A DNA stretch of 64,000 bases. It comes from Octopus sinensis. Lineage: Eukaryota. Below the pieces are notes generated by a model. It searched no databases and was not told the origin of the DNA. It saw only the letters and a list, made by a program, of their open reading frames with translations. A program made the position numbers and the translations under genes. Below, one piece after another: positions 8,800-10,395 of the stretch (position 1 is the first letter of the stretch; every line of letters begins with the position of its first letter). The stretch covers positions 186,682,001-186,746,000 of the forward strand of contig NC_042998.1 of NCBI RefSeq assembly GCF_006345805.1, written 5' to 3'.

Positions 8800-10395
8800 T
8801 TTACAAGGCTCGCTCCTCAAAATCGTCATTATCAGTCTCAACCTGTAAACATCAACCCCAAAGTCTTTGCCGTCAGCCTCAATTTCTATCATCGCTTTCA
8901 ATTAGGTTGTCGTTTGTCTTGACTTCATAATCGTCAACTTAAATACCGTCACCGTAAAGTGGAGCGAAATTATTTTATGAACTGATATTGACATTAATGA
9001 TTACTGGCTGCAAAATTGTAAAAGAATGTAAGCACTAAAGCCTTTTGTAAAACATTACAAGCTTTGTATAATAAAAAATAATTCACCTAATTGTACATTG
9101 CCGTAAATATACATGTTTAATATATTAGATGTGTGTAAGACTACATACTCTCTCTCTCTCTCTCTCTCTCTCTCTGTATATATATATATATATATATATA
9201 TATATATATAGAGAGAGAGAGAGAGAGAGAGAGAGAGAAAGAGAGAGTATGTAGTTTTACAGACATCTAATATATTAAACATATATATATATATATATAT
9301 CATATATATACCACACGACAAAGGCAAAATTAAATAACAACAGCTTAACTTTGCATCAATTATTCCCATTTCTTAACTGAGTACATTCATCTTCGGAAAT
9401 CAAAGTCAGCCTAGTGTTGATCAATACATGTATTTACGCATGTAAATATATTGAATCGATTCGAGTTGACTTTGATTACCGAAGATGGTTGTGCTGGATT
9501 TAAGCGAGTTAAGAAATGAGAATAACTAATAAAATGTTAAACTGATGTTATCTATTTCCGTCTTTGTCGTGTTGTATATGCATATAGAATAGAATGTAGT
9601 TTTACGTCCATCTAATGCTATTACACGTACTATGTATATGGTAATGCAAGGTACCACAGTTTTTTATTACACAAAACTTGTAGTCATATATAAAAAAAAA
9701 TTAATGTTTGCATTCTCTTACAATTCTGCAACAAATAATTACCGGGACGAAATTAAAGTTGACGGAGATGAAACTTAGATGGACGACAACGTAATTATAT
9801 GACTGACGATAACAAAATTGAAGCTGAGAATGACGAATCTGGGGTTGACGTTGACAGGATTGAAGTTGATAATGACGAATCTGAGGTTGACATTGACAGG
9901 ATTGAAGTTGATAATGACGAATCTGAGGTTGACATTGACAGGATTGAAGTTGATAATGACGAATCTGAGGTTGACATTGACAGGATTGAAGTTGATAATG
10001 ACGAATCTGAGGTTGACGTTGACAGGATTGAAGTCGATAATGACGAATCTGAGGTTGACGTTGACAGGATTGAAGTTGATAATGACGAATCTGAGGTTGA
10101 CGTTGACAGGATTGAAGTCGATAATGACGAATCTGAGGTTGACGTTGACAGGATTGAAGTTGATAATGACGAATCTGAGGTTGACGTTGACAGGATTGAA
10201 GTTGATAATGACGAATCTGAGGTTGACGTTGACAGGATTGAAGTCGATAATGACGAATCTGAGGTTGACGTTGACAGGATTGAAGTTGATAATGACGAAT
10301 CTGAGGTTGACGTTGACAGGATTGAAGTCGATAATGACGAATCTGAGGTCGACGTTGACAGGATTGTAGTTGACAATGACGAATTTGTGGAGAAC
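8800..10395. repeat. Ancient imperfect palindrome (head-to-head inverted duplication) centred at ~9439
   Basis: Eye alignment of the reverse complement of 8800-9435 with 9440-10395 gives many shared blocks, e.g. TGACTTTGATT(T/A)CCGAAGATG, GTTAAGAAATG(G/A)GAATAA, TTTTTTATTA(T/C)ACAAA(G/A)CTTGTA, TTAAGTTGACG/TAAAGTTGACG and TGATAATGACGA. The centre is TATTTAC-GCAT-GTAAATA. Confidence 0.8.

Follow-up and report, generated by a model that had tools for sequence, protein, structure and literature searches.

In the 64-kb stretch of octopus DNA analysed here (hereafter the window), two copies of one sequence lie in inverted orientation with their inner ends nearly touching. This arrangement raises the question of what the two copies represent: a pair of genes, a mobile element, a source of hairpin RNA, an artefact of assembly or the relic of a local duplication. 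The analysis showed that the inverted duplication is real, old, decaying, non-coding and repeat-bearing, and that the reading as a gene pair fails. The features of the locus and its surroundings are collected in Table 1.

Table 1. Features of the inverted duplication and of the flanking DNA (positions in the window).
Feature	Position	Strand	Description
SINE dimer, about 255-bp tRNA-like	8072-8611	+	Lies 200 bp beyond the left arm, with the 14-mer TTAGTCTGCGGTTG on either side
Left arm	8812-9439	- (outward from centre)	Reverse complement aligns to 9440-9889; later nested insertion 9148-9291 inside
Left-arm minisatellite counterpart	8815-8957	-	About 1.6 recognisable units (8815-8885) and older degenerate units (8886-8957)
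Nested spacer-less palindrome	9104-9291		Arms 9104-9147 and 9248-9291, 91% identical; lies in the left arm
Centre of symmetry	9431-9448		7-bp inverted repeat TATTTAC / GTAAATA; 4-nt non-palindromic spacer GCAT
Right arm	9440-10392	+	Alignable to the left arm over 9440-9889; remainder is expanded minisatellite
242-codon ORF	9799-10527	+	Acidic IEVDNDESEVDVDR repeats, ATG start; from the ORF list; judged a by-product of the array
42-bp minisatellite	9817-10384	+	13.5 units, 96% identity; consensus ATTGAAGTTGATAATGACGAATCTGAGGTTGACGTTGACAGG; TRF score 1045
SINE-like fragment, diverged, multi-copy	10445-10535	+	About 50 bp outside the right arm; BLASTN 77-87% to about 10 copies in the window; multiple alignment agrees

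The preliminary description of this DNA had placed an inverted repeat at 8800-9435 and 9440-10395. This repeat was found, with 72-78% identity in three blocks. The identity was 78% (109/140) in the inner block (9292-9439 against 9440-9590), 76% (107/140) in the middle block (8998-9147 against 9591-9740) and 72% (103/144) in the outer block (8812-8997 against 9741-9889). The same arm blocks were recovered by BLASTN and by a separate repeat search. The significance of the reverse-strand alignment had been set beforehand as a check. Local gapped alignment of the reverse complement of 8700-9437 with 9438-10450 gave a score of 368, and 100 shuffles of the sequence gave 168 ± 13 with a maximum of 200. 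The alignment is thus significant, at about 16 SD above the shuffles. The centre, given previously as TATTTAC-GCAT-GTAAATA, matches the sequence as read. The alignment of the arms begins at this centre, and the arms nearly abut, only the 4-nt spacer lying between them. No other copy or fragment of the arms was found within the 64-kb window by BLASTN. The arms are of unequal size because of two later events, the formation of a nested palindrome in the left arm and the expansion of a minisatellite in the right arm.

The core of the nested palindrome (9148-9247) is itself a palindromic microsatellite, (CT)14(TA)17(AG)19, as identified by TRF, and the repeat search calls the whole structure as 94-nt arms at 89%. 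Its predicted DNA fold has an energy of -70.6 kcal/mol (z = -18.9). The right arm carries one copy of the segment that forms the nested arms, at 9591-9639. The nested palindrome is a duplicate of a 44-nt piece of the left arm around the (CT)n(TA)n(AG)n core. A search of Rfam at gathering thresholds gave no match, and a tRNA scan gave no tRNA. When E-value thresholds were used instead, only the nested microsatellite hairpin (9129-9266) was matched, on both strands and always below the gathering threshold, by repeat-like families such as MIR1023, mir-4716, mir-3149, mir-466 and others. No microRNA precursor family of Rfam thus reaches its gathering threshold. The preliminary description mentions neither the nested palindrome nor the 42-bp tandem array.

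The part of this array at 9890-10390, about 500 bp of the right arm, has no counterpart in the left arm, and its aligned units show blocks of common variants. The array has expanded recently, and in the right arm only. The minisatellite in the left arm corresponds to 9739-9889 of the right arm. Since degenerate units are common to both arms, the minisatellite predates the inverted duplication. On the left, the arms cease to be homologous at about 8812-8815. The right-hand limit lies either within unit 2 of the array (about 9889) or at the end of the array (about 10392). The left-arm end (8812-8840) is matched equally well by the last, partial unit (10363-10392) and by the canonical unit, with 7 mismatches in 29 either way. 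Because of this tie, the number of units in the ancestral minisatellite is uncertain.

The ages of these events are given as relative only, from the K2P distance. The main arms are about 25% diverged (K2P 0.27-0.36), with 31-41 differences per 140-146 aligned positions, transitions being about as frequent as transversions. The divergence is spread evenly over the length of the arms, and the arms show no sign of gene conversion. The arms of the nested palindrome, in comparison, have a K2P of 0.10. Their 91% identity shows that the nested palindrome is younger than the main one. The uniform decay of the main arms suggests that the locus has no function.

The sole long ORF of the locus lies largely in the expanded array. 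The minisatellite unit is open in five of the six frames, and therefore a 242-codon acidic ORF can arise by chance; its last 30 codons fall in the neighbouring SINE fragment. In an exact-protein look-up, the 242-aa product and the products of three other arm ORFs had no record. A word-indexed homology search with the 242-aa product against 5.8 billion predicted proteins, including those of octopus-derived contigs, gave no match at E ≤ 1e-3. Pfam gave nothing relevant for six ORFs and no match for the 242-codon ORF. Exhaustive phmmer comparison with 1.84 billion representatives returned 708 matches. The four that were inspected are unrelated acidic tandem-repeat proteins with other unit lengths, and we therefore rejected homology in favour of compositional matching. 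It is worth noting for annotation that a minisatellite open in five frames can mimic a 242-codon acidic-repeat gene.

In the preliminary description the arms were seen as head-to-head, gene-like paralogues that share a central promoter. Taken as coding genes, they would be transcribed away from this promoter, and each would have one short intron and an acidic repeat domain. The model behind this idea is that of the large sex-chromosome palindromes, which share mirror-image arms and a short spacer with the present locus. The human Y palindromes P1-P8 carry head-to-head pairs of real genes, and gene conversion keeps their arms more than 99.9% identical. In the present locus, by contrast, the arms are about 25% diverged with no trace of conversion and contain no genes. 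The ORF with its ATG in the right arm, the GT...AG-like boundaries and the pyrimidine tract of the left arm and the GAC/GAA-rich sequence in both arms would be in keeping with a gene pair. However, the ORF derives from a unit open in five of six frames, runs out in a SINE fragment and has neither homologues nor domains. Over their inner 350 nt, both arms contain stops in every outward frame. The left arm is broken by frameshifts and has no outward frame that is free of stops, and the right arm is open across the minisatellite only. In the ORF region the gaps between the arms are 2, 2 and 1 nt, not multiples of three, and the mismatches by codon position (6/30, 6/28 and 11/28) show no third-position excess. 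An Asp/Glu-codon-rich stretch had been noted in both arms; it is indeed present in both, as the GAC/GAA-rich minisatellite, whose reading frame is interrupted in the left arm. The intron-like segments likewise exist as sequence, but their donors are at non-homologous positions: the left donor, TAG/GTGAAT, sits in an 8-nt indel missing from the right arm, and the right donor aligns with AAT/GTACAA. The acceptor in the ORF-bearing right arm is AA, and the splicing proposed for this arm would run into a TAG at 9776-9778 ahead of the acidic frame. The supposed intron is 76% identical between the arms and the supposed exons 72-78%, so that both have diverged equally. The claim of paralogous genes with introns and a shared promoter therefore fails, and a gene pair is scarcely credible. 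Equally hard to credit is an artefact of assembly or of a long read folded back on itself (a chimeric read), although chimeric long reads are well known to yield nearly spacer-less palindromes. Artefactual arms would be expected to be near-identical after polishing. The arms observed here differ mostly by substitutions (about 25%, transitions about equal to transversions), and also by the nested structure of about 145 bp and by 12 extra minisatellite units. As had been argued before, such divergence speaks against a read fold-back.

Two further explanations accept the inverted duplication as real. According to one of them, the locus functions through a long hairpin RNA. A read-through transcript would form an imperfect stem of about 430 bp, which may be processed into endogenous siRNAs or serve as a substrate for ADAR hyper-editing. 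A transcript through the locus would fold into a long, mismatch-rich hairpin: the predicted MFE fold of 8812-9890 is one giant hairpin of -427 kcal/mol with 290 pairs across the centre. This fold is strong in silico (z = -25 in comparison with dinucleotide shuffles, and z = -21 when the nested palindrome is left out). Octopus hyper-editing is very strong, and the octopus genome is reported to be exceptionally rich in loci from which long double-stranded RNA could form (PMC5625713). Inverted SINE pairs, such as primate Alu pairs and octopus repeat duplexes, are sources of double-stranded RNA in the same genomic setting, whereas the arms described here are not copies of any repeat family elsewhere in the window. 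Drosophila has hairpin RNA (hpRNA) loci made of inverted duplications (PMC10317233). They give rise to endogenous siRNAs, and their read-through transcript would form one long hairpin as it would here. However, hpRNA stems are long and near-perfect and come from an identifiable target gene. The present arms have drifted evenly to 72-78% identity, far from the near-perfect duplexes counted in PMC5625713, and no helix across the centre runs for more than 14 bp without interruption, which would make a poor substrate for Dicer. Neither a parent gene nor protein-level homology to any possible target gene was found, and no Rfam family reached threshold. A functional hairpin is thus improbable. The other explanation, which deserves more weight but which we regard as less likely than a local duplication, is a dead non-autonomous foldback-type DNA transposon: an old, decayed insertion with two long TIRs and subterminal tandem repeats whose number drifted independently in the two arms. 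The locus is made up of two long inverted arms and hardly any loop, the arms of about 0.5 kb carry 42-bp sub-repeats at their outer ends in unequal number (about 1.6 against 13.5), and the window is saturated with mobile elements. Foldback-type transposons, Galileo and Tetris among them, typically have outer tandem sub-repeats in unequal number (PMC3573991; PMC4079207). In Galileo copies consisting of two inverted repeats, the numbers of internal tandem repeats differ between the arms (PMC3573991), and in Tetris, a foldback element, internal repeats expand into arrays (PMC4079207). The Drosophila FB element, Galileo and Tetris share with the present locus long inverted arms, unequal outer sub-repeats and a non-coding nature. 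The sub-repeats of Galileo F and Tetris, however, are about 210-220 bp long, against 42 bp here. Moreover, neither a target-site duplication nor a recognisable terminal motif was found for the present locus, nor a second copy, even as an arm fragment, in the 64-kb window. When all boundaries 8790-8830 × 10375-10415, about 12,000 combinations, were scanned for 5- to 11-mers, the closest approach to a target-site duplication was a 9-mer with 2 mismatches. It was not convincing, and the termini that it implies are not complementary. Divergence of about 25% could erase a 7-9-bp target-site duplication, and the negative scan is therefore a weak test at this age. No complementary termini were found beyond the arms. 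The array ORF has no relative among predicted proteins that include those of octopus, where a LINE fragment from the same window had 40 matches, which argues weakly against a high-copy family, and the nested palindrome shows that local fold-back duplication occurs at this very place. We know of no transposase related to the locus. A scan of prokaryotic and metagenome collections, which contain no cephalopod DNA, with the best conserved 21-mer gave two JGI metagenome matches and one match in a Saprospiraceae genome. In the Saprospiraceae genome, 27 nt match exactly within a bacterial ORF of 1546 aa, and the similarity goes no further. These three matches were judged to be due to chance.

We consider, with a probability of roughly 0.55, that the locus is a non-coding remnant of an inverted duplication that arose locally, by fold-back, in the genome of an octopod. 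The preliminary description had already proposed an ancient, nearly spacer-less fold-back duplication, and this proposal is supported by the alignment of the arms and by the centre. A fold-back or template switch is the most likely mechanism. Formation of palindromes by fold-back or at closed forks predicts that a short interrupted inverted repeat is retained at the junction (PMC4689423; PMC3907307). The junction observed here, a 7-bp stem with a 4-nt loop, is consistent with a retained inverted repeat, as the centre of any palindrome would be. The models of ODIRA with closed forks, of tandem inverted duplication and of break-induced fold-back priming all yield inverted copies with a junction that keeps a short inverted repeat and a small non-palindromic loop, which the stem and the loop GCAT of the present centre would fit. 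Like fold-back or template-switch duplications, the present locus also lacks the hallmarks of mobile elements, and it has undergone a second, nested event at a palindromic (TA)n tract. It should be noted that the described cases are usually of kb to Mb size, recent and near-identical, and are often triplications or linked to terminal deletions (PMC4689423, PMC3907307), whereas the arms here are about 0.5 kb each, interstitial and about 25% diverged.

The following course of events could explain the present structure. About 0.53 kb of unique DNA, with a short GAC/GAA-rich 42-bp minisatellite at its end, would have been copied in inverted orientation beside itself. Fold-back or template switching at a short inverted repeat may have produced the copy, and this repeat, with its 7-bp stem and 4-nt loop, would still be present at 9431-9448. 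Nothing would then have kept the arms alike, and neutral drift would have brought them to their present divergence, even along their length. Later, a second and smaller fold-back at the (TA)n tract of the left arm probably gave rise to the nested palindrome, and slippage or unequal exchange in the right arm may have raised the number of minisatellite units from about 2 to 13.5. The expanded array would have been free of stops in five frames by chance, giving the 242-codon acidic ORF.

The surroundings of the locus were also analysed. Both neighbouring SINEs lie outside the palindrome and belong to its context. The monomers of the SINE dimer are 87.5% identical by BLASTN, and further copies are present in the window. 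The window also contains inverted SINE pairs, one tail-to-tail at 25477-26213 and one at 42470-42884 / 44082-44482. A LINE reverse-transcriptase fragment in the window gave 40 matches, the closest proteins being from Octopus sinensis and O. bimaculoides, which points to an octopod as the host. Inverted repeats across the window were listed by masked minus-strand BLASTN, since microsatellites would otherwise dominate. A further non-SINE palindrome was found at 30858-31412, with 105-nt arms that are 100% complementary and lie between (TA)n tracts. Since several similar structures occur in the same 64 kb, the palindrome described here is fairly ordinary.

By itself, the locus carries little weight: it adds a further decayed inverted duplication to a genome rich in repeats, and it shows no sign of a gene or of selection. 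Its palindromes nevertheless form a series of relative ages at one site, with the main palindrome at K2P of about 0.3 and the nested one at about 0.1, and with a third, 21 kb away, whose arms are partly identical. It is tempting to speculate, although we regard it as a long shot, that these three palindromes record a recurrent process in octopus, in which (TA)n or AT-rich palindromic tracts give rise to fold-back template switching and so keep producing new inverted duplications, and that some of the products, perhaps the present one among them, are transcribed into long hairpins and feed the unusually large pool of double-stranded RNA that is hyper-edited by ADAR or processed by RNAi. If such a pattern held genome-wide, recurrent fold-back at AT-rich palindromic microsatellites would be a possible source of the many duplex-forming loci described in octopus and of its ADAR substrates.

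The inverted repeat of the preliminary description was confirmed. When the reverse complement of 8700-9437 was aligned locally, with gaps, to 9438-10450, the score was 368, whereas 100 shuffled controls gave 168 ± 13 (maximum 200). With obvious insertions taken out, the arms aligned in three blocks, and the same blocks were found again by BLASTN. The centre at 9431-9448, TATTTAC-GCAT-GTAAATA, was also as described. It is the junction of the two arms and consists of a short stem and a small non-palindromic loop. The arm homology ends at 8812-8815 on the left and, on the right, either at about 9889 or at the end of a 42-bp minisatellite array (about 10392). 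The left-arm end compared equally with the canonical unit of the array and with its last partial unit (7/29 mismatches each). Past the outer ends of the palindrome, the two flanks showed no relatedness.

Parts of the main palindrome and other repeats in the window
Feature	Position	Description
Inner block	left 9292-9439 vs right 9440-9590	109/140 = 78% identity
Middle block	left 8998-9147 vs right 9591-9740	107/140 = 76% identity
Outer block	left 8812-8997 vs right 9741-9889	103/144 = 72% identity
Nested palindrome, left arm	9104-9291	inverted copies 9104-9147 and 9248-9291, 91% identical
Minisatellite, outer 570 bp of right arm	9817-10384	42 bp x 13.5 units, 96% identity
SINE dimer	8072-8611	head-to-tail, ~255-bp tRNA-like SINE; monomers 8093-8349 and 8355-8592, 87.5% identical
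SINE-like fragment, third family	10445-10535	truncated, diverged; ~10 copies in window
Tail-to-tail SINE pair	25477-26213	737-bp palindrome, 81% identity, 9-nt spacer TATGTATAT
Inverted SINE pair	42470-42884 and 44082-44482	same family as 25477-26213; 1.2 kb apart, 66-78% identity
Third palindrome, non-SINE	30858-31412	arms 30983-31087 and 31176-31280, 105 nt, 100% complementary, 88-nt spacer
LINE reverse-transcriptase fragment, C-terminal part	38409-38924 (-)	closest named proteins uncharacterised, Octopus sinensis and O. bimaculoides, <=89% identity

The arms had been described as head-to-head, paralogous and gene-like, both with an intron-like segment, and a shared central promoter had been proposed. 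We found no evidence for paralogous genes, and several tests contradicted them. Outward from the centre, the inner 350 nt contain stops in all three frames of both arms. The sole long ORF (242 codons, 9799-10527) sits on the array, where three ORFs, 183-242 codons long, overlap; five of the six frames of the array unit contain no stop. The 242-codon ORF ends inside the SINE-like fragment, which contributes its last 30 codons and its stop codon, and the acidic frame of the left arm is broken by stops. The product had no exact gene-product record, no relatives at E <= 1e-3 among 5.8 billion proteins and no Pfam domain. An exhaustive phmmer search returned only acidic repeat proteins alike in composition, with other periods. 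The ORF is thus considered spurious. In the ORF region, the inter-arm gaps are 2, 2 and 1 nt long and the mismatches at the three codon positions number 6/30, 6/28 and 11/28, unlike the pattern of coding sequence.

The introns were not borne out either. The left donor TAG/GTGAAT lies within an 8-nt indel absent from the right arm. The right donor AAG/GTACCA is aligned to AAT/GTACAA in the other arm, and the right acceptor is AA, so that an acceptable GT...AG is present in the arm without the ORF and the ORF in the arm without an acceptor. Spliced as proposed, the right arm would run into a TAG at 9776-9778 that is not in the frame of the acidic ORF. The identity of the "intron" (76%) is equal to that of the "exons" (72-78%), as would be expected of unconstrained DNA. 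The shared promoter was part of this same unsupported reading.

The history of the arms was analyzed on the basis of their repeats. The left-arm counterpart of the array has about 1.6 units (8815-8885). Older degenerate units lie farther inward in both arms (8886-8957 and 9733-9816), and the minisatellite is therefore older than the duplication. The array itself is a recent re-expansion in the right arm only. A 44-nt piece with a single copy in the right arm (9591-9639) occurs in the left arm as the two inverted copies of the nested palindrome, the core of which is a palindromic microsatellite, (CT)14(TA)17(AG)19. Folded as single-stranded DNA, the nested palindrome gave -70.6 kcal/mol (z = -18.9). 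An origin from two transposon insertions was ruled out, since what is duplicated, around a self-complementary (TA)n tract, is 44 nt of arm sequence; local fold-back copying thus appears to have occurred at least once at this site. Transitions and transversions are about equally frequent in the arms. The three main blocks have Kimura distances of 0.27, 0.29 and 0.36, against 0.10 in the nested arms; the order of events is therefore main duplication, nested fold-back and array expansion.

The simplest account of the main palindrome is local duplication by fold-back with neutral decay thereafter, to which we assign a probability of roughly 55%. It draws on the nested palindrome, on the third palindrome and on the centre, whose short stem and small loop are exactly the type of junction that is preserved in fold-back and closed-fork models of inverted duplication (PMC4689423; PMC3907307). 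The third palindrome has wider arms of about 90% identity, (TA)n tracts on both sides of the whole structure and an extra direct copy 530 bp upstream (30433-30621, 91-94% identity); it is much younger than the main one. The fold-back part of the earlier proposal is plausible, whereas its gene-like arms with introns and a shared promoter are not supported. The main rival is a dead copy of a foldback-type transposon, which we regard as doubtful. The shape fits such elements, with a pair of long inverted arms, hardly any loop and end-proximal tandem sub-repeats in unequal numbers. In Galileo copies of two inverted repeats, internal repeat numbers likewise differ between the arms, and target-site duplications are 7 bp long (PMC3573991). 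Internal repeats of the foldback element Tetris grow into arrays (PMC4079207). However, a scan of all plausible boundaries turned up neither a convincing target-site duplication nor complementary termini, BLASTN detected no second copy of the arms within the 64-kb window, and the array ORF had no match in a protein collection that yielded 40 relatives of the LINE fragment. None of these three points is strong. Many of the 40 relatives lie on short ENA metagenome contigs evidently holding octopus DNA; these assemblies probably include DNA of octopus hosts.

A conserved 21-mer gave only chance matches in prokaryotic, viral and JGI metagenome DNA collections. A 27-nt exact match between 9466-9492 and 5535-5561 of the Saprospiraceae contig CAKZUV010000154.1, inside a 1546-aa bacterial surface-protein-like ORF, was judged a coincidence, since the similarity ends there.

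The window is AT-rich, microsatellite-filled and SINE-dense, and the Octopus relatives of its LINE fragment show that the source is an octopod. Because other inverted pairs occur in the window, SINE pairs as well as non-SINE palindromes, the main palindrome is not exceptional in its setting. The SINE dimer is bracketed by an identical 14-mer, TTAGTCTGCGGTTG (8072-8085 and 8598-8611), which looks like a target-site duplication from a single insertion of a dimer. Further copies of the third SINE-like family lie at 4325, 15934, 40105, 13948, 14643, 2068 and elsewhere. The tail-to-tail pair belongs to the most abundant SINE family, of which the window contains at least 10 copies of about 420 bp. 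A 194-codon ORF at 57551-58135 (+) has zinc-knuckle-like and degenerate aspartic-protease-like motifs, suggesting an LTR retrotransposon remnant; no Pfam match was obtained at E <= 0.01. Two ORFs 1049 bp apart (51140-51250 and 52189-52300), adjoining long (TACA)n-type microsatellite arrays, share their first 37 residues, which suggests that about 1 kb was duplicated locally in tandem.

A source of hairpin RNA had also been proposed. Folding of 8812-9890 as RNA predicted a single giant hairpin of -427.2 kcal/mol, with 290 of 402 pairs crossing the centre (z = -25 against dinucleotide shuffles; -21 with the nested palindrome taken out). No unbroken helix across the centre exceeds 14 bp, and the predicted duplex is a decayed one. 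Rfam gave no match at curated thresholds; at lax thresholds, only sub-threshold, repeat-like miRNA families were hit, at a microsatellite hairpin on both strands. The hairpin is unlikely to matter as an RNA. Octopus is reported to have exceptionally dense loci capable of long, nearly perfect dsRNA, and very strong hyper-editing (PMC5625713). The main palindrome would therefore belong to a class common in this genome but, unlike those nearly perfect loci, would be a poor example of it. The inverted SINE pair 1.2 kb apart is a potential source of dsRNA if co-transcribed.
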